Source: Podarcis muralis
Taxonomy: Eukaryota
NCBI RefSeq assembly: GCF_964188315.1
Contig: NC_135667.1
Coordinates: 12,772,001-12,836,000, forward strand
Length of the DNA stretch: 64,000 bases
Direction of reading: 5' to 3'
The translations under genes were made by a program, and so were the position numbers. The notes under the pieces are model-generated. The model ran no database searches and had not been told where the DNA came from. It saw nothing but the letters and a program-made list of their open reading frames with translations. Shown here one piece after another: positions 15,850-63,890 of this stretch. Within the stretch, counting starts at the first letter, position 1; every line of letters begins with the position of its first letter.

Positions 15850-16736
15850 ATGACTCTTTCTGATTTATTTCTAGGTTGCATCACTGCAAACTCCCAACTC
15901 TAAACCCGGGCTTTGTCTTTTGAACCAGTTGAGGGAGGGGCCCCCAACCATTTCCTGTCTCACATAGAGCCCCCTTTCCTTTGTTCTCCTAATGGCCCAT
16001 CACCCAGGCAATCACCTCAACACAGGAAGGTAGCCTGGCTTATATTTTAACACTTGCTCAATCCTGGGGTTAGAAGGTTCTGACATGCAGCCAACTTCCC
16101 CCTATCCAAGCCCAAATTCATAAGAGTATATAAAATGATATAATGTTAAAAGCTAAATTGCAAGTCAGCAAGAAGAAGAAGTAGCAGAATATAGGTTATT
16201 CCTGTACGATGAATGATTTTATGCCTTTAGAAAGATAATATTTGAAGGTAGGAGATCCCTGTATAAGAATTTTGTTTCATTAGATGTTTCATAATGTGAC
16301 TCCAAAGCTTTCCAAAAGATTCTGCTACCATGCATGAAGGTGTAAATTTGGAGTTCATTGGAGTCTCCTGACCTTCTTCATCAAATAGATGCACTGGACT
16401 TCTCTTTCCCTATCTCTAACTTACTTGAGGTGTCTCTTCCTAATTGGTTCCCCGGATCTTTCTCTGTTTCTCATTGATAACTTTGTGCTCAATTCCTTGT
16501 CATGCTGTTCCAGCTTGATCAGCAGATTTGATCAGCGAGTTTGGTCTTATACAATGAACCCACCCTTTCCTCATCTCGACAATGTGACAATGTGATGGAT
16601 GGACACAAATTCCCAGCCTGTACACTGAAGAAAAGAAATACTCTTGTGCTTTTTTTCAAGACCTCCTTCTAATTAATAGATCCCTATCATTCAGTTCTGG
16701 TCTCAATAAAATAATGTAGTACAAATGTACTAGTGT

Positions 16737-17897
16737 GCCAGTGTGGTGTAGTGGTTAAGGGCGGTAGTCTCGTAATCTGGGGAACCGGTTTCGCGTCTCC
16801 GCTCCTCCACATGCAGCTGCTGGGTGACCTTGGGCTAGTCACACTTCTTTGTGTTTTTTTTTTTTTTTTTGCAAAAATTGTATTAGTTTTTACAATATCA
16901 GCGACAAACAAAAACATAAAACAAACAAAACATAACAAACATAAATCATAACCTTATTGAAAATAACAGTTATTTACTTTGCAAAATGACTTCCTCATTT
17001 CCCCTTAGTTGAATTTCATTGCATATCCTTATAAAGGTTTTCCAAATCCCAATTTTAATACCCTTTAAATTAAACATTAACATCTTTAAATCTTCTCCTT
17101 CTTGTATTAGACATATTATTTTATCAGTTAACATAAATACAATCCTAAGCCCATTAAGTATCTGGACGCTATTTCCAGTTATTTTAGCTTAACAAATTTA
17201 GCTAAATAATCATTAAATTTCTTCCGTTCTTCGTGGTGTTCCTCCTCCTTCTGGTCGCGGACTCTTCTTGTTAGGTCGGCTAGCTCCATACAATCCATCA
17301 TCTTCATCTGCCATTCTTCAACTGTTGGTAATTCTTGAGTTTTCCACTTTTTAGCTAACAAAATACGAGCCGCAGTTGTGGCATACAAAAATAGATCAAC
17401 ATCTTTCTTGGGCAATTCTGAACCTGTTATTTCAAGAAGAAAGGCCTCTGGTTTCTTTATAAATGTATATTTCAACATTTTTTTCAATTCATTATAAATC
17501 TTTCCCCAGAAGTCTTTCACCTTGGGGCAGGTCCACCACATATGAAAGAATGATCCTTCCTTTTCTTTACATTTCCAACATGTATTATCACAATTATGAT
17601 ACATCTTTGCTAATTTTACAGGAGTCAAATACCATCTATACATCATCTTCATAATATTTTCCTTTAACAAAGTACATGCGGTGAACTTCACCCCTTTCTT
17701 CCACAATCTTTCCCAGTCCTCAAACATTATATTATGTCCTAAATCTCTTGTCCACACACTTCTTTGAAGTCTCTCAGCCCCACTCACCTCACAGAGTGTT
17801 TGTTGTGGGGGAGGAAGGGAAAGGAGAATGTTAGCTGCTTTGAGATTCCTTAAAGGGAGTGAAAGGCGGGATATCAAATCCAAACTCTTCTTCTTCT
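16737..17897 (+). mobile_element. tRNA-headed SINE (about 246 bp, (CTT)n tail) split in two by an L1 insertion
   Basis: The 5' half (16737-16851) has A-box-like TGGTGTAGTGG and B-box-like GGTTTCGCGTCTCC. The 3' half (17767-17897) ends AAACTCTTCTTCTTCT. Confidence 0.85.
16852..17754 (-). mobile_element. L1-clade LINE 3' fragment, 903 bp
   Basis: Open ORF2 C-terminus with zinc knuckle CWKC...HMWWTC. Poly-A tail (poly-T on + near 16854-16870). 12-bp TSD CACACTTCTTTG at 16840-16851 and 17755-17766. Confidence 0.92.
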
Positions 17898-30204: not shown

Positions 30205-33200
30205 TCAGAATTTTCTTCTTATTAGATGCTCCCTATTGTTCAGCTCAGGCCTCAGCAAAATAATGTAACATTTTGGGGAAAAGATGCAACCCAACAACCC
30301 ACCACTGGAGGCTAAGATAGAGAAGATCTCCACAGCCACCATGTATTTCCCCTTTGTGCTCATGTAGGAAGGAACAAAGGATAACCAAACACTGCAAAAG
30401 ACCAACATGCTGAAAGTGATGAACTTGGCTTCATTGAAACTGTCAGGTAATTTCCGGGCAAGGAAAGCCACAGTGAAACTGACCATAGCTAGGAAGCCCA
30501 TGTAGCCCAAGACACAGTAAAAGAAGGTCACAGTCCCCTCATTGCACTCCAGTACAATTTCTTCAGCCACTGAATTCATATCAACATTAGGGAATGGAGG
30601 AGAGATCACCAGCCACAGAGTGCAGATGAGTGCTTGGATAAGGGAGCAGGAAAGGACAATAGAGTTTTCCAGTCCCTTCCCCACCCACTTCCTCATCCGG
30701 GATCCTGGTTTTGTGGCCATGAAAGCCAGAACCACAGTGATGGTTTTTGCCAGCACACAAGAAACAGCCACTGAGAAGATGATGCCAAAAGCAGTTTGTC
30801 GGAGGAGACATGTCACCTTGTCAGGATATCCGATGAACAGTAATGAGGAAAGGAAGCAAAGCAAGAGGGAGATGAGTAGAGCGTAGGTGAGGTCCCGGTT
30901 GTTGGCTTTCACAACAGGAGTGTCCCTGTGTTTCACAAATATTTCCAGTACCAGTGCTGTAATGAAAGCAAAGGAAAGAGCAGAAGTGGCTAAGCTGAGG
31001 CCCAGAGGTTCTTCAAAGGACAAGAATGTTGTATGCTTAGGAATACATATAGTCTTATTTTTGCTTGGATAGTTTTCATCTTCACATTCGTAGCAGTCAT
31101 TCACGTCTAAGAAAGAAAAGCATGGTTCTTAATCTGAAAAATATGAGCAACATGCCACTGCTTGTAAATACATAATTAAAATGATTAAAAAAGGATACAA
31201 TGAGTTCTGAACAATGGAAATTGAAAATGGTGGAAACTTGTCCTTCTCACATATTGGATGTAAAATACTGATTGAGGCAAAATGCAAGGCCACAGAGAGA
31301 CTTCCTGTTCTCTGGCTAGAAGCCAACTCAAATTAACCTGTCACAGATCTAGTTGCTAACACTTACTTACTCCCTAATTAAGGAGTACAGTGGTACCTCT
31401 GGTTGCAAACGGGATCCGTTCTGCAGGCCCGTTTGCAACATGAAAAGAGCGCAACCCGCAGCAGCGCGTCTGCACACGCACGGGTTGGTAGAAGCACACG
31501 CTTCTCTGCATGCGTGAGTGGCGAATTTGGAAGTAACCCTGAATATAACATGAAGCAGACGTAACCAGAGGTACCACTGTATTTGTGTAATTCAGTCTTT
31601 GCAAATTTCAACATTTGAAAACTTAATCAACACCTTTCAATCAGTTCCTGGATTTAAGTATTTCACACTTCTCCAAACATTACGGCACAATTTTCTGAAG
31701 TATAAGGGCATAAAAATACATGTTTAAATATGTTACCAGAAAATAAACACAGATTCAAATATTTGTAAGAAAATATATATATTCCTAAAGACATTTTGAG
31801 AGAAAATGCAGGAATAAGTATATAATTAAACAAATTAATTATGGGCAAAAATATGTGAAAGTAACAAAAGCTAGAAACAGATTCAGCCATCTGTAGCCAA
31901 AGTGTCAAAACTGATTTCAAGATCTGCTGTAGAGGAAGATATTACATTTAGGTAGCCGTACTATGCCAAGATGATGGCATAATGCAAGCCGGGCATAAAT
32001 TATGACGGCATAAAGTACAGCAGATCTAAAATCCATTCTGAAGCAGGGATGCCACTGGTTGAGCAGTTCAAAGGCTATCAGAGAGAAAACAAGCTTTTAA
32101 AATAGTGTTGGGGTTACACCACCCTTTTCATTAGCTTAATTTAGGCTGGGTTTCCAGGTATTGTGACCAAGCTGAATAACCTTCATGAATTGTATTCTAA
32201 CCCCACCCTGGTCTCAACCCTGATATAAAGGCATATTTTCAGCTGCTACAGAAACCTCCTGGCTCATCTGAAAATCTACTTTATACTAATCTTGTTCAAG
32301 CTGGTGGATCTTGCTATAGGATTCTTCCTTATAACAGCATTCAACATCCACAATCACTAATATTGTGGCTGCTGCCACTCTGCCGTGAGTTTGTGGGGAG
32401 GACCACTCCCCCCTGAAGCCCTTTTCCCACCTTGGGCCTGGGGGCGGGCCCCATACTCCACCTCAGCATATAAGGCTCCAAGGAGGCCTCGGGACATTGC
32501 TGCTGCCGCTCTGCCGTGAGTTTGTGGGGAGGACCTCTCCCCTGCAAGCCCATTCTCCACCTTTGGCCTGGGGGCGGGCCCCATACTCACCTCCACAGCT
32601 TATGGGGCTCCAGGGAGGCCTCGGGTGCGTAGGGTGGGGTGGGTGTTTAGTTGGGTGTGGGAATTTGTTTAATTTAATTATGTTGTGTTTGTAACTTTGT
32701 TTTTTGTTTATATAGTTTTATTGTTCTGTTAGTTTGTTTTTTGTATAGGCTTTAATTTGATTTTAAGGGGAGGGGTCAGGGCTGCCTGGGAGTGGGTCCC
32801 AGCAAACAAAGTGGCTGGGGCAGGTTCCACAGGGGGGGATGCACTCGGACAACCGATCTCAGTGATCATGGGTAGGAGGAGGAGTTACGCTAAGACCAGA
32901 CCATGTCATTACCGAGGAAGCAGGCTTAGTCGTTGTCTGAGGACTATCCCTGCCTCCAGGTCTGGTCCTGACCGGAAGGATACTGGAATCAACAAGGGAA
33001 ACCCACATGACCTGAAAGTGTTGCTGTGCAATGCCAGGTCAATGATGAATAAAACCACTGCCATCCACGATCTGATTGTGGATGGAGGATATGACCTGGC
33101 ATGTGTGACAGAGACCTGGTTGGATGAAGCAGATGGGCCCGTCCTTGCCGCTGCTTGCCCACCAGGTTTCTCTTACGCACAGCAATCCAGGACTTGTGGG

Positions 33201-36142
33201 CGGGGAGGGGGGTTGCAGTGATTTTTAGGAAGTCATTAGTTTGCACCAGGCGTCCTATTGGAAAGACCCAGTTCTCTGAGTGCATGTTCTGGAAGTTGGG
33301 CAATAGGGGCAGTACAGGATTCCTATTGGTGTACCGACCTCCCCGCTGCACCAAGGATTCCCTGCCCGAGCTGCTTCAGGTCGTGGCGGATGTCCTCCTG
33401 GAGACACCTAGTTTGGTTGTCCTAGGGGATTTTAACATCCATGCCCGCACGACCTTACAAGGGGCCGCTCGGGACTTCATGGAAAGCATGGCCTCCATGG
33501 GGCTGTCCCTGAATAAGTCTGGCCCAAATCATAGCCACAGGCATGCCTTAGACCTGGTGTTCACCTCTATGGATGTTGGTGATCTGACACTAAGTAAAAG
33601 CGAAACCAAAGAAGTGCCATGGTCAGATCACTTCCTGGTGCAACTGGACTTCTCCGCGACCCTTCCCCTCTGCAGGGAGGCGGGACCGATTCAGATGGTC
33701 CGCCCCCGCCACTTAATGGATCCAAATAATTTCCAGAGAGTGGTAGGGGATGTTTTATCCCAAGTTAATGGCCTTTCAGCTGATTCCCTGGTGGCCCGCT
33801 GGAATGCAGAGTTAACCAGGGCTATTGACTGTCTGGCTCCGAAGCGCCCTCTCCGATTGCATGGAGCCCGGACAGCCCCGTGGTTTTCCACGGATCTGAG
33901 GGCAATGAAACAATCGTTGAGACGGCTAGAGCGCCGGTGGCTGATAACCCATTCTGAATCTGACCGGACACGGGTTAGAGCTCAATGTCGAGCCTACCAA
34001 GTGGCGATAGCGATGGCGAAGAAGACTTTCTTCACCGCCTCTATTGCATCTGCGGAAAACAGCAGCAGGAGACTGCAGCAGGTGGTTCGCAATTTAGCGG
34101 AACCACCTGCGACATCGGGGCCCAGTACGGGCCACATGATCTCCTGCAATGACTTTGCAAAGTTTTTTGCAGATAAAGTCGCTCAGATTCGAGAAGAGGT
34201 AGACTCCACCGTGGGAGCAGGGCTGGGGCGGGAGAGTGCTAGAGTCCTGTCTAGTCAAGTTGTGTGGGATCAATTCCAATCTGTTACCCCGAGGATGTGG
34301 ACAGGCTGCTTGGACGAGTGAAACCAACCACTTGTCTCCTTGATCCTTGCCCATCCTGGCTTATAAAAGCTAGCCGGGAAGGACTGGGCGATGGGCTTCG
34401 GGGGGTGGTGAATGCTTCCCTCCGTGAGGGAGCCTTTCCAGACCCGCTGAAAGAGGCGGTTATTAAACCGCTTCTTTAAAAGCCATCTTTAGATGCGGCC
34501 ACGATAGCCAACTATCGCCCAGTCTCAAATCTTCAATTCTTGGGCAAGGTGATTGAGCGAGTGGTTGCTGAACAACTCCAGGCACGCCTGGAAGAAGCAG
34601 ACCATTTGGATCCCTTCCAGTCGGGATTCAGGCCTCATCATGGGACTGAAACTGCCTTGGTCGCACTGGTTGATGATCTCCGGCGGGCTAGGGACAAAGG
34701 TGAGAGCTGTTTCCTAGTTCTGCTGGATCTCTCAGCGGCGTTTGATACCATCGACCATAACATCCTTCTGGACCGTCTTGAGGGACTGGGAGCTGGGGGC
34801 ACTGTTATACAGTGGTTCCGCTCCTTCCTCCTGGGCCGTGTTCAGAAAGTGGTGGTGGGGGATGAGTGTTCAGACCCCTGGGCCCTCACTTGTGGGGTGC
34901 CTCAGGGTTCTGTCCTCTCCCTCATGCTTTTCAACATCTACATGAAGCCGCTGGGAGAGATCATCAGGGGATTTGGGCTGGGTGTTCATCAGCATGTGGA
35001 TGATACCCAGCTCTACCTCTCTTTCAAATCAGAACCAGTGAAGGCAGTGAAGGTCCTGTGTGAGTGCCTGGAGGCGGTTGGAGGTTGGATGGCGGCTAAC
35101 AGATTGAGGTTGAATCCTGACAAGACAGAAGTACTGTTTTTGGGGGACAGGAGGCGGGCAGGTGTGGAGGATTCCCTGGTCCTGAATGGGGTAACTGTGC
35201 CTCTGAAGGACCAGGTGCGCAGCCTGGGAGTCATTTTGGACTCACAGCTTTCCATGGAGGCACAGGTCAAATCTGTGTCCAGGGCAGCTGTTTACCAGCT
35301 CCACCTGGTACGCAGGCTGAGACCCTATCTGCCTGCGGACTGCCTCGCCAGAGTGGTGCATGCTCTGGTTATCTCCCGCTTGGATTACTGCAATGCGCTC
35401 TACGTGGGGCTACCTTTGAAGGTGACCCGGAAACTACAACTAATCCAGAACGCGGCAGTTAGACTGGTGACTGGGAGCGGCCGCAGAGACCACATAACAC
35501 CGGTCTTGAAAGACCTACATTGGCTCCCAGTACGTTTCCGAGCACAATTCAAAGTGTTGGTGCTGACGTTTAAAGCCCTAAACGGCCTTGGTCCAGTATA
35601 TCTGAAGGAGCGTCTCCACCCCCATCGTTCTACCCGGACACTGAGGTCCAGCACCGAGGGCCTTCTGGCGGTTCCCTCACTGCGAGAAGCCAAGTTACAG
35701 GGAACCAGGCAGAGGGCCTTCTCGGTAGTGGCGCCTTCCCTGTGGAAACCCTCCCACCAGATGTCAAAGAGAACAACAACTACCAGGCTTTTAGAAGACA
35801 TCTGAAGGCAGCCCTGTTTCGGGAAGCTTTTAATGTTTTAATGTTTGATGTATTATAGTATTTTAATATTCTTTTGGGAGCCGCCCAGAGTGGCTGGGGA
35901 AGCCCAGCCAGATGGGCGGGGTATAAATAATAAATTATGATGATGATGATGATAATAATTTATTTATAGTTCTCCCATCTGGCTGGGTTCTCAGAATTGT
36001 AGTCTGAACCAGAGTTTCAACCAGATTCATCCTCCAAACTCATAACAATATATTCAGTATCAGCAAAATCTATTTAGGATTCTCTTCTTCAATTTGTCAT
36101 TTAACATATTCACTTTGAGTGTAACTGGAACCAATTACAAAT

Positions 36143-45908: not shown

Positions 45909-48900
45909 TATAAAATAAGTGGACTCAAAGAAAAGCTAAAAAGGGAAGTTAAGCTCTTCCTTAAAAGGGATTTGCAAGAGAACATTATTTTCAGAAATTC
46001 ACTTACTAGCCTGTTTCAATTCCATTTTGACTCATTTCCTGACATTTATGAGTGACTCGATGTGCAAACTCCAATAAATTGTTGTTTTTTGCAGTTGCTA
46101 TTGTAGACAGTAAAGTTTTTAATATTATCGTCTATAGTCAAGGTTCTTTCTGCCACTGTGACATTAAGGGGTTGTGGTTGTGTCAATGCAAATTAAGCTC
46201 CAGAGTTATACACCTGCTATTGCAAAACCTTGAAACATGGCATTCATAATCTGCCTTTTGAGGTGTGCAAATGTGTCAAAACCTTATACCCATTTTGTAA
46301 AAGGAGCCACAGTTTAGAAAGTGCTGAAAATTAACATAAGGTCCCATTTGAAAATGAAATATTTATACCTGCAATCCATTGGTCTTAACTAGCCAGTCAA
46401 TGCCATTAAGTAGTATAGCAAACTTATTATTTCTACCCCGCCCATCTGGCTGAGTTTCCTCAGCCACTCTGGGCGGCTTCCAATCGAGTGTTAAAAACAA
46501 TACAGCATTAAATATTAAAAACTTCCCTAAACAAGGCTGCCTTCAGATGTCTTTAAAAGATAAAATAGCTGCTTATTTCCTTCACATCTGAAGGGAGGGA
46601 GTTCCACAGGGCGGGCGCCACTGCCGAGAAGGCCCTCTGTCTGGTTCCCTGTAACCTCACTTCTCGTAATGAGGGAACCGCCAGAAGGCCCTCGGCGCTG
46701 GATCTCAGTGTCCAGGCTGAACGATGGGGGTGGAGAGGCTCCTTCAGGTATACAGGACAGAGGCCATTTAGGGCTTTAAAGGTCAGCACCAACACTTGGA
46801 ATTGTGCTTGGAAACATACTGGGAGTCAATGGAGATCTCTCAGGACCGGTGTTTTGTGGTCCCGGTGGCCACTCTCAGCCACCAGTCTTCCCTTTATCTG
46901 TTCTCCCCTCACTGATGCAGGAGCCCAGAACTGTAATGTAAACCAGGGTTTCATCCAGACTGATCCTCCAAACCCATAACAATATATTCAATATCATAAA
47001 AATCTTTTTAGAATTCACTTCTTCAGGTTCTCATTCAATATATTCATTTCAGTATAACAGAAACCAGTATAGAGGCTGTGCATTTAGCTAATAACATTAA
47101 TTCAAAGCTTGTGCCATCTATAATCCAATTTTATAAAAGCTGAACAATATACAGTGAAAATGTCTGGCTGATGGTTGCATCCTACCTGGTTAAACCAATG
47201 GTGCCATTTGATGGCTCCCTCATTGATGGTCAATACTTGATGTGGAGGAGCCAGGGAATCCACCCCTCCTACCTTCACCCTCTGAAAGGACTGGTTGGAG
47301 GAAAGAATCCAATTGGTAATATCAATTCCAGCTACTATCTCCCCATTCTGGTCAAAGGAAATTTTATCCCCAGCGCTGTTGTTAAATGAGATACCCCTCA
47401 GAAAATGATGGAGCTAGATAGAAAAAGAAAGAGAAAGTAGAGAAAAGGCTTCAATTTAGCAGGACACAATCATGATGTTTACTTTTATGTCAGGTTTCCA
47501 AATATTCACCTTGGAGGAAAGTGGTTTTCTTTCCATCTTTCTTTTTTTATATACAGTATATAAGATTTAAGCCAGGACGTGGGTGGCGCTGTGGTCTAAA
47601 TCACTGAGCCTATTGGACTTGCCGATCAGAAGGTCAGCTATTCGAATCCCCGTGACGGGGTGAGCTCCCATTTTTCGGTCCCAGCTCCTGCTCACCTAGA
47701 AGTTGGAAAGCACGTCAAAATGCAAGCAGATAAATAGGTACCACTCTGGTGGGAAGGTAAACGGCATTTCCGTGCACTGCTCTGGTTTGCCAGAAGCAGC
47801 TTAGTCATGCTGGTCACATGACCTGGAAGTTGTCTATGGAAAGACACCGGCTCCCTCGGCCAGTAAAGCGAGATGAGCGTGCAACCCCAGAGTCGCCTGT
47901 GACTGGACCTAACGGTCAGGGGTACTTTTACCTTGAAGATTTAAGCCAAGCATTTCTCATATTTGGAAGTTCATTTTAAATTAAATTAAGATCTGCAGCA
48001 AATGCTCACACAACCATAAAAAGCTTTAGAAAGTTAGAAAGCTCTTTTTTGACTCTATATCTATGCTATGTGATATATCATTCCTTTGATACTCCAACTT
48101 CAGAGGTAAATGAGGAATCAGCCCCATGCTGATCTAAGAGGTTGGCATGAATAGTTGAAACAACAGGTTGAAGAAGCAAAATCTTGAAGTTGGCTATATC
48201 ATGCTTGGATAGAATTCATTCCTTTTTTTCTCTTTCTGTATTTCTACTTTAAGTTCAAACAGTTTAAAAGAAGAAATTTAAAACTTTTAAAATAATAAAA
48301 ATTAGCAGTAAAATGAAAGATTAAATAATGTCAACATACATGTGACTGTCAGATTTGCCTAAACAAATACAGGTGCCTAAATGAATACAATGAAGGTGTT
48401 TGTCTAATGACAATAGACAGGGAAGTCTAGTAGGCTGTATATGAACCTAGAAAAGCATGTGGAGATGTTCCCATTTGTCACTATGTGCATTTCAAGAGAG
48501 ATAAAGCAACTATCTCATGGCCAAAGGACAGTGAATTGAGGCAGTGGCTTTGGGGGCACCTGGGGAAGATTTCAAGTGCAAAAATCTGTGGTTGCTTAGA
48601 AAAAAGTGATAGTTAACCTAATGGAGAGATAGAAAAGGCAAACAGAACATGTTTTGAACCTATTTCAGGAAGGGCAATCAACCCAGTACCTGCCACAGAG
48701 GTTGTTTGTCAAACTTCATTCCTCCGCTGATCATTACTAGTCTGTGTTTGACTTGGGACGTAGACACGGCATGTAAAGCATAAATACTTAATTGACAGGA
48801 AAGTGGGTGCTCTGTTCATTTTGTTCTCTGTAATATATCATCTTGCTCCCTATAGACACTATATGCCAGGGATGTTCAACAGGTCGATTGGGAACGACTG

Positions 48901-51562
48901 GTCGATCCCCGGGAGGTTCTGGCATTTCAAGAGAGATATGGCAACTATCACATGGCCAAAGGGCAGTTAATTGGGGAAGTGGCTTTGGGGGCACCTGGGG
49001 AAGATTTCAAGAGCATTGGTGACCCCTGCTGTGGTTGCATAGGAAAAGTGACAGCAAAGGAATAGATTGATAGAAAAAGGCAAAGAGAACATGTTTTGAA
49101 ACTGTTTCAGGAAGGGTGTGCAGCCCATTACCTGCCACAGCGGCTGAATCTGAAACTTCATTCCTCCACTGATCATTACTGGTCTGTGTTTGCCTCGGGA
49201 TGTAGACATGGCATGTAAAGCATGGGCCACAGCATAGACAGCATTGTAGATGTTGTAGCTGTGGCTAGTCATGCTCATTTCAAAGAAAGGGCCAGGAAGA
49301 TTCTCCAGCTTCTCTTGCCCAGTGCAAATATCCCCCTTCACACTGCCAACCACTTGATTTGGAAATACACAGCCAAATGCCTGTTGCCAGAAGTCCAGAA
49401 TAAAGCCATCTCCTTTTGGGCTGGAAGGGTTTTTGCTCTGGACAAATTGACGAAATCCTGGTGGATCATTTGAGTGAGTTGTGAATGAGAGAACCCCATG
49501 GAGTATTTCTGTATCCCAAGTCCGTTGATAGACAAAAGAAGTGAGCTCCACCTGGGCTGTCATAATCCACACTTTACCTTTTGGGGTATTTGAACTTTGT
49601 TCCAGTTCTGATAGGTAAGGAAACCACCTGAAATATGCCCCAGAATTTGATTCTCCATAAAACAACACCACATTGGCTTTGCTATCATTTATTTTGTCAT
49701 GTATTTTTGCCCCCAGTTTAAACAAACTGCTAATTTCAGTGACATAAGTAGGTTTGTGACTTCTTTCTATGAAGGCAAAACAGATGCCATTCTGGGAATA
49801 AAGTGGAACTACAGTTTGCACAAATCTTTCTGCATTCTCATCATAGAAAGTAAGGATTCCAATCCATATCCACTTGAAATGCAGAAGCAAAGACAGGATC
49901 CCCTTATACTGGTGGGCTTCCTTGGGCATCATCTGGTAGAAGAAAAGGCCTGGAGTTTTATCATTCACCACTGGAGCAGGGCCATATATGAGCTAAACAT
50001 AGTTGTGGTAGGAGGCGAAAGAGACAGAAGCAGCAGTTTTATATATATATTAGAAGTGTGTATTATAAACATCACTGGGGCAATTTCCATTTGGGCCTTC
50101 CAATCCTCACCAGTTGGGCTGCCCATGCTATTTTTGTTTAGCCAAGCAACAGTCACCTGCCAATCAGCTGTTATCATAGATCAGGCATTGGCTAGGCCCA
50201 GAGGGAGACCTGAAACAATAATTTATGTGCTATCTAGAGTTTATTTCTTACCTTGGATCTGCCATTATCATGGCCCACCTGATTATTTGAAATGTGCACA
50301 TTTTATTATCCAAATCTATCTGGATGTGCCTAGTTTCCATGACATGTCAGAGAGATATATATCTCACCTGTGGAATCTTATAGATATCCAAGATTGTTGC
50401 CACATGAAGGGAGGTTTGGGAGTCCAGTCCCCCAATGATGGCTATTAAGTTTTTCTTGATGTCACAGATGTAGTTGGGGACAAATGTTTCCAGTGTGGAT
50501 AAGAGTAACATTGTGGCATAAAAGGTCCATTTCACATTGAAATAGGTGTCATAGATACGGAAGCCGAAAGTGACATTGGGTAAGAGCTGAGGGTTTCCGT
50601 TGATCTCTTCCACTGCAAATTGCAAGGCTAGTATATGCTGGTAATTCTTAGGTACCACACTAAAAAGAGATTTTCATTTTTTATCAGAAGGGCATGTAAC
50701 ACTTTGTAAATTTACCACAGCTCAGTTCTACATCATCCTCATTAGTATTATTTATTACTGTAATTATTGAAGGGTTTTTTTTTTTTTTGCAGAGGAGGAA
50801 ACTCTTGAACAGGTATCACTACAAGTGATCCTCCACTTTGCCTAAAATGGTAGAAAAGGGATGTAGGGGAAAATTCTATGGGAGCGGAGTGCAGACTTTA
50901 AAATGTCCCTAATACACATCTTTAATGCTGGTTTCATAATCTGTGTCCTTTTCTCATTCTCTTGGGGCCCTGAAGCAAAAGTGATGCAGTTATTTACAGA
51001 ACAATATGACATGTCTTCATATTATACCTGAATGTTTAATTCAGTGGGGGAACTGGCAAAAATTTCTTTAAACTAGTGGAGATCCTCCTGACCACATTTC
51101 TCCCACATCATATCTCCTTTGATCCAAACAGTAGTTCTGCCTCTAGGAGAAGGGTGGAGAACTGTGGCCTCCAGATGTTGTTGTCCACCAATATCCATTA
51201 TAATTGATGGATATTCTTGGCTGGATCTCATGGAGTCAAACAACCACTGCATGGCCACAGTTTATCCACCCCTCCTCTAAAATTAATCTCCGCAGTGTCC
51301 AAAGAAGGAAACAAAACGTAGAAGTAAAATTATCAAGGTCTTACTATAGCTCTTCAAGCAATGTTGGTGGGGGTTTTTCAGTGAAGGCTATTGAACTGGA
51401 GAGGATGATGCTGTGAGAGGCTATGCCACCAATGATGAGGTCTCCTTCCTGATGATACTGATGAAGTGGAGTGTATGGATCATGGACATGGCATTTAACA
51501 ATGGGAGGTTTGCATATTGCACGAGGAAGTAGAGTCAGCAACAAGACCAATAATGCCACCAT
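44052..51562 (-). CDS. Vmn2r: V2R receptor, copy D (6 exons, 875 aa, apparently intact; most divergent ligand-binding domain)
   Basis: Exons 51562-51345, 50659-50368, 49992-49132, 47413-47186, 45849-45723 and 44953-44052. Exon 4 is missing from the ORF track but reads open by hand ([32 protein letters not shown]...WFNQ). C-terminus RRNC*. Confidence 0.94.
45864..45905. repeat. (AG)n microsatellite next to the exon-5 acceptor of gene D
   Basis: Read directly. Confidence 0.95.
46426..46888 (-). mobile_element. L2 LINE 3' fragment in gene D intron 4
   Basis: The reverse complement matches the 3' end of the 32358-35960 element (LTFKALNGL...[14 protein letters not shown]; 3' end ...CAGCCAGATGGGCGGGGTA). 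Confidence 0.9.
47575..47935 (+). mobile_element. Full-length Sauria-type SINE, 361 bp, in gene D intron 3
   Basis: tRNA-like head and ...GGTCAGGGGTACTTTTACCTT tail, with a 13-bp TSD AAGATTTAAGCCA at 47562-47574 and 47936-47948. Confidence 0.92.
48690..48781 (-). pseudogene. Orphan duplicate of the 3' end of V2R exon 3 (pseudo-exon) in gene D intron 3
   Basis: Reads [30 protein letters not shown] followed by an intact GTACTG donor. 12 mismatches in 92 nt against the true exon end at 49132-49223. Confidence 0.88.
48867..48920. mobile_element. Possible hAT-type transposon end fragment at a deletion junction
   Basis: CAGGGATGTTCAACAGGTCGAT...GACTGGTCGATCCC resembles hAT termini and replaces roughly 330 bp of paralogous intron 3. 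Confidence 0.4.
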
Positions 51563-52381: not shown

Positions 52382-54529
52382 GTCACATCATTGCAAACTC
52401 TCAACTCTAAACCCAGGCTTTGTCCTTCCACCCAAATGATGGAGGGGCTCAAACCATTTCTTCTCCCACATAGAGCCCCCTTTCCTTTGTTCTCCCAATG
52501 GCCCATCACCCAAGCAATCACCTCAACACAGGAAGCTAGCCTGGCTTATATTTTAACACTTTCTGGATCCAGGGATTAGAAGGATCTGACATGCAGCCTA
52601 CTTCCCCCCGTTCCAGCCCAAATTCATAACCGTATATAAAATACACAACAGCAAGAACAAAAATGGCGGAATATGAGCTGTTCAATTACAATAAATGATT
52701 TTATATCAGTAGAAAGAGTAATATTTGAAGGTAGCAGATCCCTGTATTGTAATTTTATTTCATTGGATGTATCATAATGTGACCCCAAAGCTCTCCAACA
52801 GGGATCCTACTGCCATGCATGAAGGTTTCAATGTGGAGTTCCTTGGAGTCTTCTGACCTTCTGCATCAACAGGGATAGATGCGCTGGACTACTCTTTCAC
52901 TATCTCCAACTCACTTTGAGTATCTCTTTCTAATTGGCTCTCCAGGTCTTTCTTTCTTTCTCATTGATAACCTCATGTTCAGTTCCTTGTCTTGCTGCTC
53001 CAGCTTCATCAGCAAATTTGATCAATGAGTTTGGTATCATAAAATGACCCCTCCCCAGATTCCTCATTTAGACACTGTGACAATGTCATGGATGGACGCA
53101 AATTTCTAGTCAATACAATATAGGAAAGTGAAACTCATGCATTCTACAAGACTTCCTTTTAAATAATCAATCCCTATCATTTAGTTCAGGTCTCAAACAA
53201 ATATTGTAGAGCAGATGTACCAATATGGAATACTCAGTTAATAAAGAGAAGAATTCTGGCTATGCTTTTATCCTGATGCCCAGGAAGTGTTGGGAGATGC
53301 ATGTACATGTAATCTACCTATGAACCTCTAAACATACACATATAAGAGGTGGCTCTGTTTTGTAAGTCAAACACATGGTGCCCTTCAAATGTGCCTAAAC
53401 ACTTCTAAACTCAGAAATTCACAACACAGAGAATTTGAAAAGCAAACTTTTATTACAGTAGGGTGGTGGGTAATGAGGCTTCAGCAACTATGTTACAATA
53501 TTGCAATGTAATGCTTTCATGGGTATATTTTAATTCTAATATTCTAATTCATTCATACTCCATAATTTCAAAGGAGAAGAGTTCATTCAAAGGGGAAAAG
53601 AAAGTGGTGAAACATAACCCCTAGTTACAGAAGTTTCTATGGTTTCAACCACTCGAGGGAAACCCCATGGAATCACTAGAAGTGGGCCCTTCTTCCTGCC
53701 CAGTGCCCCTTTCCCCAACTTAAACTGGTGTCTTGAGTCTTTCTTAGTTTGAGACGGATGGCAAAACATTTTTACCCAGATTATCTGTCAGATTTAGAGT
53801 TTTGAAGAAAGCATGTGGGGGGAAAAGATAGAGTAGGTCCTTCATAAACCTTATAGTACTCAGTGTGTTATTTTTTGTGACTGTTGTTATGTGCATTTTT
53901 AAAAAGATTTCCACAAACTTATCCTAAAAAATCTCCACTAGAATGGGGCAGGATATACATTAACAGCCACATGCAGAAAAGTAATATGGGATTAGACATG
54001 GTAAAATTGTTACATCTCTAGTATGGAATATTTGTGGGGAAGACTATCAGGGCAGAAAAGTACAGTGCCGAGACCTAAGAACCACAAACACAGAGTTCAC
54101 AGTGAGCAGGTACAGTAGATCTGGAATTGCTGAAGATGGGACTCAGCATGTTGAAAGAGGGCAAGTAGTGGAGATTTGCAGGTAATAGGCATCTGCACAG
54201 CTAACCTGATCTGGGTGTGAAATCTGTGGCCCTTGATTGGGCTGGTGAAGGGAACACTGGCCCTGCACTGTATCCATCCACAGAGCAAGTTGGGGGCAGG
54301 GCTAATATTTTATTGGTGTTTTAAAAATTCTGATTAAAGTTGGAAGCAGGCAGATGAAGGAGACACACCATCTCCTTGCCACTTTGACTGACAACAGAGG
54401 AGAGTTTAATCCTGTGCAGTGTTAGCCTGAAGAGGATTCTGGGTGCTTCTTTTGAGATGCATACAAATCTCTGAACTAAATATTATAGCCAATGTCACAT
54501 ACTTTTGATTTCTTCAGCATTTTCTTCTT

Positions 54530-55822
54530 GGTTATTCCCCCCCCCCCCCCGCCGCCCTTTAAACATCTTTATTTAAAGTTCAAAAAGTACATAATTATAT
54601 GTGGACTAAACACGGTGAGACGTAAATAAAAGAGAAAAAAAGAGAAAGAGAAATTTTCTTCATGTTTTAGGTTATATAATTCTTCAATCCAATCATAGAA
54701 CGCAGCAACATGTTTATTTTTCCCAATTTATCAGTATCAGTCTTTTTTCTGTGGTAAGGGCATGGAGAGTCCACTCATATTATTCCATGCACTTTGTGTA
54801 TAATTCAAGAGGATATCTTGCTCTGTAAATGTAAAGTTGTTCCACACAGTTCTGTGGATAGTTTCAGTTTCCTTCTGCCAAAAACCTTTCAATATAGGAT
54901 TATCCCTATTGCATCTCCAACAGTTAGATACCTTAAATAGCCCTTTTAAAAGCAAACAACATGGGATCCAGTATATTCTAAATATTATTTCTTGTTGTAT
55001 GAGCCTCAGTTTAAGGTCCACAGACACCCTTATTATAGCATTAAAAACAGTGTCCAACTGTGTGGTCAAAAATGAGGTCTCTAATTTCTTATTCCAACCC
55101 TCCCTCAATGCCTGTATATCAAATTAGTTTGCTACTAACTAAGATTTATATATGTCAAGGGCCACCTTTTTTGTTGCATAAGAATCAATCAAATGCTTCA
55201 ATATATCTGGAGATATTTGCATTGAGCATTTGTAGGCAATCTGTATTTGTCTCTTAAAATGGAATATGCATAAAATTCCCCCTCTTCATTTATTAGCTGG
55301 TCTAACATTAATATACCCAAATTGATCCACCTCCTCCATACAACCATTTCTTTCCCGATTATTAAAGATGGGTTTCCCCACAAAGTCATTTTGTTGAGGA
55401 AGAAAGGGTAAAATTTATATTTTTGGGACATGTGGTGCCATTTTGTTAGAATTAAAGTTATTGTTTCAATAGCATATTGAGTATTAATGTATTTAGACTC
55501 AAGTCCTTCCCATCTTTCTAGAGGTGCTAGAAAGGAATATTCCAAAGCAGCCCCGTTTGGACAGTTGTTTTCAGTTATGGGTCTCCAGAATTGTGTACCT
55601 GACAGTAAGCATGCTTGGTGATACAATTCTAAGATTCGGATTCCAAATCCTCTTCATTTTATCCATATTTGCATTTTTTGCACAGATATTCTTGGAAACT
55701 GAAGAGCTCTAAAGGCATTTTCTAAACAAAGATTTGATTTTGAAAAAGAATTGGTTCGATATGTGAATTGGAATTTCTCTTCAGATATAAACTAGTCTAT
55801 GTATTATGTTCAGTTTAAGAAA
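54530..55822 (-). mobile_element. L1/Tx1-like LINE 3' fragment (1293 bp) inserted in the terminal codons of gene E
   Basis: 11-bp TSD ATTTTCTTCTT at 54519-54529 and 55823-55833. Degenerate ORF2 C-terminal frames (55198-55626, 54737-55108). AATAAA on the minus strand at 54568-54573. Confidence 0.85.
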
Positions 55823-58800
55823 ATTTTCTTCTTATTAGGTGTTCCCTATTGTTCAGCTCAGGCTTCAGCAAAATAATGTAACATTTTGGGGAAAAGATGC
55901 AACCCAACAAGCCAGCACTGGAGGCTAAGATAGAGAAGATCTCCACAGCCACCATGTATTTCCCCTTTGTGCTCATGTAGGAAGGAACAAAGGATAACCA
56001 AACACTGCAAAAGACCAACATACTGAAAGTGATGAACTTGGCTTCGTTGAAACTGTCAGGTAATTTCCGGGCGAGGAAAGCCACAGTGAAACTGACCAAA
56101 GCTAGGAAGCCCATGTAGCCCAAGACACAGTAAAAGAAGGTCACCGTCCCCTCATTGCACTCTAGTACAATTTCTTCAGCCACTGACTTCATGTCAGCAT
56201 TAGGGAATGGAGGAGAGATCACCAGCCATACAGTGCAGATGACTGCTTGGATAAGGGAGCAGGAGAGGACAATAGAGTTTGCCAGTCCCTTCCCCACCCA
56301 CTTCCTCATTCTGGATCCTGGTTTTGTGGCCATGAAAGCCAGAACCACAGTGATGGTTTTTGCCAGCACACAAGAAACAGCCACTGAGAAGATGATGCCA
56401 AAAGCAGTTTGTCGGAGGAGACACGTCACCTTGTCAGGATATCCGATGAACAGTAATGCAGAAAGGAAGCAAAGCAAGAGGGAGATGAGCAGAGCGTAGG
56501 TGAGGTCCCGGTTGTTGGCTTTCACAACGGGAGTGTCCCTGTGCTTCACAAATATTTCTAGTACCAGTGCTGTAATGAAAGCAAAGGAAAGAGCAGAAGA
56601 GGCTAAGCTGAGGCCCAGAGGTTCTTCAAAGGACAAGAAGGTTGCACATTTGGGAATACATATAGTCTTATTTTTGTTTGGATACTTTTCATCTTCACAT
56701 TCATAGCAGTCATTCATGTCTGAGAAAGAAAAACATGGTTCTTCAATCCAAAAAAATGACCAACATGCCACTCCGCTTCCTCTATTGTTTGTTTTTTTCA
56801 ATATTTTGAACCGGTTTTTAAAAATTAAAGTTTGATCTTGTGAATACAAAAGCGTATAAGGAGTTCAAAACAATTAATATTGAAAATGATGTACCCATGT
56901 TGAATACTGATGATGTTAAAATTCAAGGGGGGGGGGGGACACACATACACTTCCTGATCTATATACAGAAGCCAACTTAAATTTTGCTCTCACTCTTTTT
57001 GTTGCTCCCACTTACTTACTCCTTCATTAAGGAGTGATTGTGTAATTCAGTTTTTGCAAATTTCAACATTCTGTGACCTTTCAACATCTTTCAACTGTTT
57101 TCTGGATTTAAGTATTTCACACTTCTCCATACATTACGGCACAATTCTCTGAAGTTTCAGGGCATCAAAATAAATGTTTAAATATGTTACCAGAAAGTAA
57201 GTGGACATTGAAATAGTGTTTGTAAGGGAAAAATAAATGTCTAAGCACATTTCAAGAGAAAATGCAGGATTAAGTATATAATAAATCAACAGAAAAATGG
57301 GCAAAAATATGTGAAAGTAAAAGGGATTCTGCCATCTCTAGTCAAAGTGTCAAAACAGATTTCAGGGACTGCTGTAGAAGATGATTTCACAAATAAGGAC
57401 AAATACTATGCCAAGATGATGGTGAAATGGAATCCCGCCATAAATTAAGACAGCATAAAGTGTACTAGATGCAAAATGCATTCAGGATCAGGGCTGCCAT
57501 TGATTGAGCTACCTAAAGCTTGTCAGATAGAAAACAAACTTTTAAAATAGTGTTGGGGTTACACCACCCTTTTCATTAGCTTAATTTAGGTTGGGTTTCC
57601 AAATCATGTGACCAAGCTGAATAGCCTTCATGCATTGTATTCTAAGGACACCCCCCACCCTGGTCTCAACCCTATATGATATTTCCAGCTGTTACAGAAT
57701 GCTCATTCTGGCTCATCTGAAAATCCACTTTCTACTAATCCTGTTCACCCCGGTGGAGCTTGCTATATGATTCTTCCTTAATAATAGCATTCAACATCAC
57801 AATTTATCACACACACACATACCTTCATTAGGTCCCTCTTCTGCTAGATTTCTAAATATTTCATAAGGTGTAAAAAGGAATCTTGGTGATTGCATAATTT
57901 TATATGCATGTTCTTGGATCAGAGGCAACAAGTTATAAATATAGACAGTAAATTTCTTACCCTCCTTGTCTGAAATCTTCCCTTCTGGACATGGGATGCA
58001 ATCGTAGCAGCAAAATGCTTCCCCCTCCTTCACTTTCCTGCAAAAACCAGGGCGGCAACTCTCAGTACATACAGACTTAGGCTGTGTCTATTACACAAAT
58101 GAAAGAGAGAGATGTATAAAATAAGTGGACTCAAAGAAAAGCTAAAAGGGGAAGTTAAGCTCTTCCTTAAAAGGGATTTGCAAAAGATCAACAACATTCA
58201 TTTCCGCAATTCACTTAATAGGTTGTTTCAATTCCAAATTGGACTCATTTTCTGACATTTCCCATTGACACAATGTGCAAACTCCAATAAATCGTTGTTT
58301 TTTGCAGTTACTGTTGTGGATAGTAATGTTTTTAACATCCTCTTTAGTCAGGACTCTGACTAGGTATGCACACCTCTTTCTGCCACAGTGACATTGTGGT
58401 GGTGTCACTTAATGCAAAGTTGACATCAGATAGAGTTATACACCTGCTATTCTAAAATCTTGAATTGTGGGATGCATAGTCTGCTTTGTGAGGTCTACAA
58501 ATGTGTCAAAAATTCATACGAATTTTTTAAAAGGAGCCACCGTTTAGAAAGTGTTGAAAATTGACATATGGACCCCCCTTTTTTTACTGAAATGTTTATT
58601 TTACTGTAATATTTATACCTGCAAGCCATAGGTTTGCTTTCTAATTTTGGTGAAAACCACTGATGCAATTTATTCGCTTCTCAAAAATGACATGCTGTCA
58701 TTGGCTTGCCAAAGGTCAGAGTGGTTCAAAGATGACTAATGTTTTAATTTTTTATTGTTTTTATTTGTGAATTCTGAAAAAGTAACAGTTCAGCTACATG

Positions 58801-61800
58801 ATTAATGTTTTCCTTGCCCATTAAAGAATATGGGAGCTAGAAGCAACCATCTATTTTTTAAAATATCTTTTTAATTAAACAAAATATTTTGTTTAAAATT
58901 CAACCCATGTGGTCTGATCAAAAGTGTTTTTGTGCAATGTGTATTACAGCACCCCACATTCTTGCCTTGGGTCTTTTAGCAAAGCCACAATACAGAGCCA
59001 TTGCTCTCTATCCAGTAGATGGTGGCATCTAATTCTCCACTCAGCTATTCATTTGTGGGCTTAATATCAGTATCGAAGGAGGAGCATTCAGATGCCCCAG
59101 GGAATGATTCATAGTGACAGCCAAGGGGTACTGAGGTACAGAAGCGGGTAAGGACTTCCTTGTTGATGATATTGAACAGACTATATTAAACACCAATGAC
59201 TTTACATTGTTCTTTTGTTCTGTCTAGGAATATAACAACCAGAAGTTATAGGGATTAGGTTTTTGTTACGGGGGTTATGTAAAAGCTGATGTCACATCAT
59301 GTTTCTTCCTTCTCTCAGCATTGTTATAAATATAGGCACAGATGTGTGGCAGCCCAAGTATTTGAGATACTATCTAGGTTGGCCCATTGGGTGCAATTTG
59401 CATTTATATTGTTATATGCTACATCAGGCTCTGAGCAGTGAGAGAATCAGGACTTAGATTTCCTTTTAAGTAAGCTCAGTGGAGACCACAGAGTCTTGAG
59501 CATATATGGCTTTATTTAAACATGCAAGCATATGGCTTTATTTATACTAGTTCTGCAAGCTTCCCTTTATGTGTTCTCCTCTCACTGATGCAGGATCCCA
59601 GGATCGGAATGGGAACCAGGCTTGAAATCAGACTGATCCTCCAAACTCATAACAATATATTCAGTAGAATATATAGAATAGAATTCAATAGAATTCACTT
59701 TTTTAAGTTGTCAATTAATACATTCATTTCCAGTGTTAAAGGAACCAGTATAGAGGCTGTGCATTCAGCTTATAACATTAATACATAGCTTGTTCTGTCT
59801 TTAATCTTTACTCCAATTTTATAAAGGCTGAAGAATGTATAATGAAATTATCTTTGTATGTTATGTTAAAGTGTTTAAAATCACAAATGGGTGATGTTCG
59901 CATCCTACCTGGTTAAACCAATGGTGCCATTTTATGGCTCCCTCATTGATGGTCAACGCTTGCTGTGGAGGAGCCAGGGAATCCACCCCTCCTACCTTCA
60001 CTCTCTGAAAGGACTGGTTGGAGGAAAGAATCCAATTGGTAATATCAAATCCAGCCAATATCTCCCCATTCTGGTCCAAGGAAATCTTATCCCCAGCGCT
60101 GTTGTTAAATGAGATACCCCTCAGAAAATGATGGAGCTGGATAGAAAGAGAAAGTATAGAAAAGGCTTCAATTTAGCAAGAGATAACTATGATGTTCACT
60201 TTTTATGGCAGGTTTCCAAATATCCACCTTGGCGGAAAGCAGATTTATTTTCATATATAGCCAGGTATTTCTCACATTTGGAAGTTCATTTCAAATTACA
60301 GATTTTTAAGATCTCCTGCAGCAAATGCACACACACTAATAATTTATTAGTGGAAAGTGGGTGCTCTGTTCATTTTGTTGTCTAAAATACATCACATTGC
60401 TCTCTATAGACACTATATGCTATGCTACGTGATATATTATTCCTTTTATACACCAACTTCAGAGGTAAATGGGAAAACAATCCCATGCTCATCTAAGTGT
60501 CGGTTTGCAAGCCCCCTCCTCAGAGGCTGGCCCCTCTCACTGTCCTCGGAGCTTGCTTACCAGTAACCTCCTCTGGCTGATATCCAGACAGACCAGGGAG
60601 ATTTTGATGGGCGACATTTTCCCAAGCGTGGGTAAAATGCACAACCCCTCCCTCCTGCTTCCGCAGGGGAAAGAAAATAAGTCAGAAATCTATTTACATG
60701 ATGTTTATTTCTGACATTACAGCACTAGAGAAAAACACGTCCTTTCAGTTCAGTTCTTCTAGCACGTCTGACAAACTTCCTGAACATGCGCAGTTGGAAG
60801 GTTTCAAATTACACTCTTCACAAAGATTTATCCAGCCTGTGAACGTCCTGGGAAATTCTTCTTTCCCACAGATAGGCATATCATGTGATGTCAACAATCT
60901 GGCTGTCTGCAGCTGTGATGTTTCCATATACTGACACTAAGAGGTTACTATTAATAGTTGAAGAAACAGGTTAAAGAAGTAATGGTGATAAAGGCAAAGT
61001 CTAGAAGTTGGCTATATCATGCTTGGATGGAATTCATTTTCTTTTGTTCTCTTTCAGTATTTCTACTTTAAGTTGAAACCATTTAAAAGAAGAAATTTAA
61101 AATATCTAAAATAATAAAAATTGCAATAAATCCAGTTTTTCAACCAATAATAATAATAAAAATTAGCAGTATAATGCAAGGAGATCAAAATACGTCAACA
61201 CCCATGTGACTTGCCCAATCAAAAATATTTTAAGCAGGTGCCTAAATGAATGCAGTAAAGGTCTCTGTCTGATGTTAATAGGCAGAGAAGTCCAGTGGGC
61301 TGAAAGTGAAGCTAAAAAAGCATGTGGAGAAGTTCCCATTTGGCTCTATGTGCGTCTCGTGGCCAAAAGGCAGTGAATAGAGGAAGTGGTTTTGAGGGCA
61401 TCTGGGGAAGATTTCAAGACCATTGCTGCACCCACATTGCTGACCCCTGCTGTGGTTGCATAGGGAAAATGACAGTTAACCAAATGGACAGATATAAAAG
61501 GCAAACAGAACATGTTTTGCACCTCTTTGAGGAAGGGTGTGCAATCCAGTACCTGCCACAGTGGCTGATTCTGAAACTTCAATCCTCCCCTGATCATTAC
61601 TGGTCTGTGTTTGCCTCGGGATGTAGACATGGCATGTAAAGCATGGGCCACAGCATAGACAGCATTGTAGATGTTGTAGCTGTGGCTGGTCATGCTCATT
61701 TCAAAGAAAGGACCAGGAAGATTCTCCAGCTTCTCTTGTCCTGTGCAAATATCCCCCTTCACAATGCCAACCACTCGATTTGGAAATACACAGCCAAATG

Positions 61801-63890
61801 CCTGTTGCCAGAAGTCCAAAATGAAGCCATCTCCTTTTGGGTTGGAAGGGGTTTTGCTCTTGACAAATTTATGAAATCCTGGTGGATCATTCGAGTGGGT
61901 TGTGAATGAGAGAACCCCATGGAGTCTCTCTGTATCCCATGTCCGTTGATAGACAAAAGAAGTGAGCTCCACCTGGGCTGTCATGATCCACACTTTACCT
62001 TTTGGGGTATTTGAACTTTGTTCCAGTTCTGATAGGTAAGGCAACCATCTAAAAAATGCCAGAGCATATGATTCTCCATAAAACAAGACTACATTGGCTT
62101 TGCTATCATTTATTCTGTCATTTATTTTTGCCCCCAATTTAAACATATCGTTAATTTCAGTGACATATGTAGATTTGTGACTTCTTTCTATGAAGGCGAA
62201 GCAAATGCCACTCTGGGAAAATAGTGGAGCCACAGTTTGCACAAATCTTTCTGCATTCTCATCATAGAATGTTAGGATCCCGATCCATATCCACCTGAAA
62301 TGCAGAAGCAAAGACAGGATCCCCTTATACTGGTGGTCTTCCTTGCGCACCATCTGGTAGAAGACAAGGCCTGGGGTTTTATCATTCATCACTGGAGCAG
62401 GGCCATATATGAGCTAAACGTAGTTGTGGAAGGAGGAGAAAGAGACAGAGGCAAAAATAACTTTTTTATATTAGATTTGTGTATTAAGAGCACTGTTGGG
62501 GCATTTTCCAATTGGGCCTTCTAATCCTTGCCCTTTGGGTTGCCCATGCTAAGCCCTTTTTGCTAAGCCAAGTGATACTCACCTGCCAATGAGCTGTTAT
62601 CATTTATCAGGAACTGGCTAGGCCAAAAGGGATGTCTGAAGCAATAATATATGTGCTATCTATACTTGATTTCTTAACTTGGATCTGCCATTAGCGTGGC
62701 CCACGTGATTATTTGAAATGTGTGCGTTCATTTATCAGAATGTATCTAGATGTGTTAAATTCCCGTAAGGTGACAAAGAGATGCACATCTCACCTGTGGA
62801 ACCTTATAGATATCCAAGATTGTTGCCACATGAAGGGAAGTTTGGGAGTCGAGTCCTCCAATGATGGCTATCAAGTTTTTCTTGTTGTCACAGATGTAGT
62901 TGGGGACAAATGTTTCCAGTGTGGATATGAGTAACATTGTGGCATGAGAGGTCCATTTGGCATTGAAATAGCTGTCATAGATGTGGAAGCCTAAAGTGAC
63001 ATTGGGTAAGAGCTGAGGGTTTTCGTTGATCTCTTTCACTGCAAATTGCAAGGCCAGGATGTGCTGGTAATTCTTAGTCACCACTCTAAAAAGAGAGTTT
63101 TATTTTCCATCAGAAGAGCATGTAACACCTTGTAAATTTATCACAACACGGTTCTACATCATCCTCATTAGTATTATATTTTACAGCATTTATTTAACTT
63201 TTTTTTAAAGGGGAAGAAATTGCCTTTAAAATGTCCCTGATACACATTTTTTAATGCTGGCTTCATCATCTGTGTAGAAGTCCTACCCTTATTTCATTGT
63301 CTTGGAGCCCTGACGCAAAAGTGATACAGTTATTTACAGAACAATATTACATGTCTTCATATGATACCTGAATGTTTAAATCAGTGGGGGAAGTGGCAAC
63401 ATTTTCTTCAAATTTGTGGAAATTCCTCCTGATCAGATTTCTCTTACAACATATCTCCTTTGACCCAAACATTAGTTCTGCCTCTAGGTCAAGGACGGAG
63501 AACTGTGGCTCTCTAGATGTTGTTATACTACTATGTCCATTATTATCGATGGAACTGATGGAGTCCAACAACCACTGCAGGGCCAAAGTTTAGCCACCCC
63601 TCCACTAAAAATGATCAATCCAGTGCCCAAAGAAGGAATCAGAATACAGAAGAGAAATTATTCAGTTCTTACTCTATCTCTTCAAGCAATGTTGGTGGGG
63701 GGTTTTCAGTGAATGCTATTGAACTGGAGACGATGATGCTGTGAGAGGCTATGCCACCAATGATGAGGTCTCCTTCCTGATGATACTGATGAAGTGGAGT
63801 GTATGGATCATGGACATGGCATTTAACAATGGGAGGCTTGCATATTGCATGAGGCAGTAGAATCAGCAGCAAGAAGAACAATGCCACCAT
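55815..63890 (-). CDS. Vmn2r: V2R receptor, copy E (6 exons, 876 aa; last codons and stop supplied by an L1 insertion)
   Basis: Exons 63890-63673, 63085-62794, 62413-61553, 60136-59909, 58087-57961 and 56719-55815. Ends RRKFS*; the displaced native end (K-C-stop) lies at 54514-54522. Confidence 0.93.
60498..60936 (-). mobile_element. Solo LTR, 439 bp, in gene E intron 3
   Basis: TGTCGGT...ACTGACA termini (TG...CA, imperfect inverted) with a 5-bp TSD CTAAG. Minus-strand AATAAA at 60704-60709. Empty site GCTCATCTAAGAGGTT in B and C. Orientation is tentative. Confidence 0.85.

Follow-up and report, generated by a model that had tools for sequence, protein, structure and literature searches.

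How can a receptor gene stay open after a transposable element (TE) has landed within its coding sequence? The question is raised by a stretch of 64,000 nucleotides of the wall lizard Podarcis muralis (contig NC_135667.1, positions 12,772,001-12,836,000 of the forward strand, assembly GCF_964188315.1), which we refer to as the window, in whose coordinates all positions are given, and whose sequence contains no Ns. The window harbours five tandem V2R genes, copies A-D at 5484-51562 and copy E at 55815-63890, and the terminal exon of copy E is interrupted within its last codons by an insert of 1293 bp (54530-55822, minus strand). Squamates are known for large V2R repertoires and, to our knowledge, insertions within coding sequence are almost always destructive. 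We regard it as probable that a 5'-truncated long interspersed nuclear element (LINE) of the L1 clade entered the last codons of copy E by target-primed reverse transcription (TPRT) and that the gene has tolerated it.

The insert is bracketed by two exact 11-bp copies of ATTTTCTTCTT, which form the target-site duplication (TSD), its length falling within the roughly 7-20 bp usual for L1 insertions: one on the gene side (55823-55833, minus strand; AAGAAGAAAAT in gene sense) and a distal one (54519-54529, minus strand). This motif is found four times in the window, copies A and C each having one match at their homologous C-terminal position, against an expectation of 0.18, and none of 100 shuffles reached four. 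When the insert and one repeat copy were deleted by script and the resulting sequence was compared with the rest of the window by blastn, copy E aligned unbroken across the junction to all four paralogues, with 87-93% identity. Copy E is a filled site that stands against four paralogous empty sites in the same window, and the 1293-bp insert with its 11-bp duplication, which an earlier note on this DNA had described, was recovered with identical boundaries.

Read in gene sense, the proximal junction is AGA AGA AAA T|TT TCT TAA, i.e. R R K F S stop. The gene-side TSD copy comprises the last two bases of an Ile codon, the R-R-K codons and the first base of the new Phe codon, which straddles the junction, while the following Ser codon (55818-55820) and the stop TAA (55815-55817, minus strand) derive from the insert. 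Copy E ends in RRKFS*, in place of the ancestral RRKC*. The ancestral last codon and stop, TGC TGA, are stranded at 54514-54519 (minus strand), the T of this TGC (54519) being at the same time the last base of the distal TSD copy, and the sequence beyond aligns with the 3' flanks of copies A-D. The rewritten end and the stranded TGC-TGA with its paralogous flank had both been claimed in the earlier note, and the gene-sense reading and the alignment with the paralogues bear them out. The residue replaced by the insertion is already variable among the paralogues (C, S, F, C), the C-termini of copies A, B, C and D being RRKC, RKKS, RRKF and RRNC; the note had correctly given RRKF* as the native end of copy C.

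The mammalian L1 endonuclease prefers 5'-TTTT|AA-3' on the primed strand. In copy E the primed (bottom) strand reads TCTT|AT at the nick and agrees at four of six positions with this consensus, which is mammalian and may not be that of the lizard family. The endonuclease-site fit claimed earlier is a loose one.

Could the insert be an artefact of the assembly, in which an L1 fragment was misjoined into the tandem V2R array? Sequence in the array is highly repetitive, with parts of exon 6 at several hundred times the k-mer depth of single-copy sequence, and the C/G homopolymer close to the distal end of the insert breaks short-read contigs; both would make a misjoin easier to imagine. A perfect 11-bp duplication at a site that is empty in four paralogues speaks against it, and so do the reads. 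Half or more, approximately, of the sampled words of the stretch are contained in each of 18 DNA-type runs from five studies, and read-derived contigs from four runs were placed at 97% likeness: X1, X2 and X15, which are DNA data sets from three studies, and X19 from a fourth study, whose type (RNA) is only guessed. All four contain contigs that bridge 55822|55823, the junction on the coding side (X1, 55714-55860; X2, 55714-55872; X15, 55745-55872; X19, 55341-55966). The distal junction is reached in X2, in which a contig at 54204-54545 runs through the flank and the repeat into the insert, of which it includes 16 bases, and ends in the homopolymer. Joints that skip the insert were not reported among the contigs of these four runs. 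The earlier note had named read support of the junctions as a check, and with four runs, each from a different study, bridging the coding side and one of them reaching the distal side, we give an assembly artefact almost no credence.

The same contigs carry information on the age of the insertion. In the X19 contig, 12 of 482 positions within the insert, but only 1 of 144 in the coding part, deviate from the reference, and overall the filled-site sequences depart from it by 2-3%. Given that the filled site is found in every individual examined, that these sequences have diverged by 2-3% and that the L1 frame has decayed (see below), we infer that the insertion is old and probably fixed. The filled junction (55714-55872) occurs in two versions in each of the DNA runs, neither of them identical to the reference and both departing from it by about 3% (about 4 positions in 140). 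They stem either from divergent haplotypes or from another V2R locus, beyond the window, in which the L1 insertion is present by inheritance. In X1, X2 and X15 a loose end at 55823 was considered as an empty allele and rejected, its TTTAGC being the flank of copy A, where the distal flank of copy E is TTCAGC. Likewise, X19 was rejected as transcript evidence: its RNA type is guessed and it does not cover 56020-56900, a region conserved in hundreds of V2Rs.

Is the gene behind the insertion still intact? The exons of copy E were found as minus-strand segments free of stops upstream of exon 6, with boundaries read from the sequence; the continuity of the frame was checked by script on the joined model, and Pfam was run exon by exon. 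The six exons, all on the minus strand, lie at 63673-63890 (exon 1, with the start codon at 63890-63888 and a signal peptide), 62794-63085 and 61553-62413 (exons 2 and 3, both ANF_receptor), 59909-60136 (exon 4, a stop-free segment), 57961-58087 (exon 5, the NCD3G cysteine-rich domain) and 55815-56719 (exon 6, 7tm_3 with E 3e-88, the new stop included). AG/GT is present at every junction, and the 876 codons are open with one terminal stop, in agreement with the claim that the insertion had left the gene open. The Venus-flytrap, cysteine-rich and seven-transmembrane (7TM) domains detected by Pfam make up the architecture of a class C G protein-coupled receptor (GPCR); the assignment to V2R, rather than to CaSR, T1R or GPRC6A, is assumed from the large tandem family and the squamate V2R literature (PMC3590772).

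Copies A-D align without gaps to the exons of copy E, share the same canonical splice sites and have 875 open codons, and all five tandem copies are intact six-exon genes of 875-876 codons. Their exons are 91-97% identical to those of copy E, whereas the introns reach 75-87% identity and contain many indels, a contrast which points to purifying selection, to gene conversion limited to exons, or to both. Two parts of the 7TM exon (55929-56019 and 56293-56383) show contig k-mer depths of 1400-5000 in three individuals, compared to about 10-25 in single-copy flanks; from this depth, the genome must contain hundreds of near-identical V2R 7TM segments.

Copy E has the lowest pairwise ratios of nonsynonymous to synonymous substitution rates (dN/dS) of the set, 0.19-0.27 against the other copies. 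Its private changes, which we define as codons where the four other V2R copies agree and E differs, comprise 7 nonsynonymous and 19 synonymous ones (site ratio 3.5 to 1; P = 4e-8 against neutrality), and its private branch, with an omega of about 0.10 and a private dS of about 0.033, displays the strongest constraint among the five copies. Our data show strong purifying selection on copy E's own branch. Furthermore, the approximately 290 homology-supported codons of the L1 frame contain at least two disabling lesions, compared to none in the 876 codons of the receptor; provided that the L1 frame was intact on arrival, this difference suggests that the constraint persisted after the insertion.

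These results bear on a second explanation, which we consider unlikely, namely that copy E has been crippled by the insertion at the level of its RNA, with 1.3 kb of sense L1 right behind the stop codon leading to poor elongation or aberrant polyadenylation, and that the frame is open either from recency or from repair by gene conversion with a neighbour. The identity of exons (91-97%) relative to introns (75-87%) in the array is also expected from exon-limited gene conversion and would suit this explanation. It is less easily reconciled with the 7 to 19 private changes and the constraint on copy E, and with the decayed L1 frame and filled sites 2-3% apart, which imply that a long time has passed with the receptor frame intact.

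The structure of the presumed transcript is relevant to the same alternative. The sense strand of the insert is A-rich and contains AATAAA at 55289-55294, 54713-54718 and 54568-54573 (all minus strand), the last of which lies near the L1 3' end, where the earlier note had placed it. A further AATAAA at 54309-54314 (minus strand), in the ancestral 3' flank and homologous to ATTAAA in copies B and C, is likely the ancestral poly(A) signal; it is situated about 200 nt past the old stop, and is now 1.5 kb past the working one. As far as can be judged from these motifs, the mRNA would carry a 3' untranslated region (UTR) derived from L1, and the end of the transcript may lie at one of the three AATAAA within the insert or, by read-through, at the ancestral signal. 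According to the exon-junction rule, a stop in the terminal exon is not expected to trigger nonsense-mediated decay; since the new stop of copy E lies in the terminal exon, it should not by itself do so. A crippled copy E is favoured by the three AATAAA inside the insert, by the lack of RNA support among the runs containing the stretch and by experiments in which sense-oriented L1 fragments of open reading frame 2 (ORF2) behind a reporter reduced its expression (PMC3036906); intronic L1s are known to cause cryptic polyadenylation (PMC3192792). Nevertheless, premature polyadenylation within the insert would still yield an mRNA with the complete coding sequence.

What kind of element is the insert? 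Its 142-residue ORF (55198-55626, minus strand) was the query of an exhaustive search of 1.84 billion representative proteins, which returned 37 matches, mostly short fragments, the closest of them 51% identical. One of the 37, P0034 (1243 residues), bears Exo_endo_phos, RVT_1 and zf-RVT domains and matches LINE-1 ORF2 protein chains with E 6.7e-83; the insert ORF aligns to its residues 951-1004, which follow the reverse transcriptase and precede the zinc knuckle. A profile made from the 142-residue ORF and its short relatives, with the three domain-bearing matches omitted, finds residues 936-1014 of P0034 with E 6.6e-11, scaled to the whole library, and also two zf-RVT-bearing fragments; all of 200 shuffles of P0034 scored 10 bits or less against this profile. 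A tblastn comparison of all 37 proteins with the insert gives collinear alignments, in one frame at 55695-55204 and in another at 55120-54854. The remnant of ORF2 in the first frame (55204-55695, minus strand) corresponds to the segment between reverse transcriptase and zinc knuckle (P0034 936-1014) and includes an in-frame TGA at 55656-55654, and the remnant in the second frame (54737-55120, minus strand) extends to the ORF2 stop and retains what is left of a zinc knuckle, CWRC, which shows a weak alignment to the zf-RVT part of P0034. The passage from the first frame to the second takes at least one frameshift, located between 55204 and 55120.

On the basis of the link to P0034, the independent profile and the collinear matches in two frames, we take the insert to be the 3' part of an L1-clade element, 5'-truncated, decayed and in gene sense, which consists of the C-terminal part of ORF2 and the 3' UTR. 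The endonuclease and reverse-transcriptase parts are gone through truncation, and the C-terminal segment alone is present of ORF2. An L1 origin had been proposed in the earlier note, which named absence of likeness to L1/Tx1 ORF2 as its refutation; such likeness was found in the profile match to P0034. Neither a second copy of the insert nor any likeness to the other L1 at 16855-17883 was detected by blastn and tblastx against the rest of the window, a word-based protein search found no close relative, and a feature search of the ESM Atlas gave no usable match. The best relative, P0001, is encoded on a metagenome contig of 765 bp and is uninformative on the 3' end of the element. The read depth of 20-70 across most of the insert suggests that the genome contains few near-identical copies of it.

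The 3' terminus of the insert (54530-54556, minus strand) consists of GGGCGGC, 14 G (54537-54550) and AATAACC, without a poly(A) run; it is preceded at a distance of 11 nt by the AATAAA at 54568-54573, which is 38 nt from the insert end. The 14-base C/G homopolymer is as the earlier note had described it, and at least 9 of its bases are real in an independent Illumina-derived contig. Elsewhere in the window, a search for the G-run followed by AATAACC returned the original site as its sole match. An end of this kind, without an A run where the other L1 of the window has 17 A, and with a homopolymer present in independent data, could indicate an arrival out of the ordinary: the element might belong to a lacertid L1 lineage free of A-tails, or represent a chimera that arose by a template switch from another RNA, or from 3'-transduced sequence, to L1 RNA. 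We consider such an arrival improbable. The spacing of the AATAAA from the G-rich stretch (11 nt) and from the insert end (38 nt) suits a normal L1 end with a short, decayed tail, and in mammals the 3' UTRs of L1 typically contain G-rich tracts (PMC4407331). The most economical reading regards the G-run as a G-rich tract inside the L1 3' UTR and AATAACC as the remnant of a short decayed tail. The end had been called atypical for having a G-run in place of poly(A); the missing poly(A) stands, and the G-run is probably internal to the 3' UTR and not a tail.

The course of events under an ordinary, tolerated L1 insertion can be outlined as follows. A copy of an L1-clade LINE would have inserted by TPRT. 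The insertion duplicated 11 bp of its target, replaced the final Cys codon by Phe-Ser, supplied the stop and displaced the ancestral TGC-TGA with its flank 1.3 kb downstream. The receptor frame would then have been kept under constraint while the inserted L1 frame decayed, and the mRNA may end either at an AATAAA within the insert or, after read-through, at the ancestral signal. We infer that the change was tolerated from the minimal alteration of the coding sequence, the already variable residue, the position of the stop in the last exon, the intact frame of 876 codons and the purifying selection. The earlier note had likewise described a tolerated exonic insertion, and the open frame, the variability of the replaced residue among paralogues and the selection on copy E's own branch agree with it. 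A more far-reaching version, in which copy E is expressed with a stop and a polyadenylation site long supplied by L1, its TE-derived end being fixed and domesticated, and the element represents a lacertid L1 lineage that integrates without poly(A) and ends in a G-tract plus AATAACC, appears quite unlikely to us.

Several observations count against a tolerated L1 insertion. With regard to the gene, the selection signal spans the entire private history of copy E and not specifically the time after the insertion, and gene conversion among paralogues could also help to maintain the open frame. With regard to the RNA, a sense L1 ORF2 fragment could, by analogy with the reporter constructs, hamper copy E, and none of the runs containing the stretch is on record as RNA. 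With regard to the element, Pfam and PDB sequence searches with the insert's two own ORFs gave matches at chance level only, its L1 link comprises about 80 residues, in an ORF2 segment that is poorly conserved, and a poly(A) tail is missing beside the downstream TSD, whereas the other L1 of the window has one of 17 A. Finally, the support for the distal junction is a contig that extends only 16 bases into the insert, short of the 31 that the read tool requires for a full bridge.

Further traces of mobile elements and of rearranged receptor sequence were noticed in the array. Between copies A and B, a relic of a V2R exon-6 C-terminus (16662-16718, minus strand), of which 19 residues are 74% identical to the tail of copy E, stop included, lies, next to 16720-16871, directly behind a SINE-like (short interspersed nuclear element) fragment and the 17-A tail of another L1. 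The relic may be all that is left of a sixth V2R copy, destroyed by rearrangement or by insertions. The A-tailed L1 possesses an ORF of the ORF2 C-terminus at 17179-17883, and an ORF of 638 residues is located at 13562-15478 (minus strand), likewise in the interval from copy A to copy B. Three long ORFs (154, 388 and 421 residues; 32757-35805, plus strand), putative parts of a LINE protein, lie antisense within intron 5 of copy C and bring its length to about 5 kb. Copy D has, within its intron 3, a partial second 3' end of exon 3 (48690-48815, minus strand; 46 residues, 54% identical), downstream of the real exon 3 at 49132-49992.

The insertion into copy E illustrates how a receptor gene can outlast such a hit in a tandem family that evolves fast: the point of entry was the final codon of the terminal exon, a variable one. 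The filled site with its dated L1 fragment is a potential natural marker for duplication and gene conversion in the V2R array of wall lizards, and copy E provides a natural test of the effect that a sense L1 behind the stop codon has on the formation of reptile 3' ends.

In its ORF2 C-terminal homology, 5' truncation, 11-bp TSD and AATAAA near the end, and loosely in its T-rich nick (TCTT|AT), the insert resembles 5'-truncated L1 insertions generated by TPRT. In contrast to typical L1 insertions, it lacks poly(A), ends in a G-run plus AATAACC and belongs to a very divergent family. TEs are known to supply genes with a stop, a 3' UTR or a poly(A) site by L1 exonization and cryptic polyadenylation (PMC3192792, PMC2176070), and copy E is comparable in that a sense L1 provides its last two codons, its stop and at least the first part of its 3' UTR. 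However, most gene ends supplied by TEs involve intronic L1s that act by splicing or premature polyadenylation, whereas the element in copy E lies within the coding part of the terminal exon, and the use of its polyadenylation signals is putative. In this respect copy E is one more tolerated TE insertion at a gene end and involves no new mechanism. As for the host, the class C GPCR architecture, the six exons and the five intact tandem copies in 60 kb of a family that is very large by its read depth are shared with the V2R arrays of other squamates (PMC3590772). For the snake V2R transcripts examined by Brykczynska et al. 2013, no large insertions or deletions are reported (PMC3590772); copy E differs from them in carrying a 1.3-kb insertion in its last codons.

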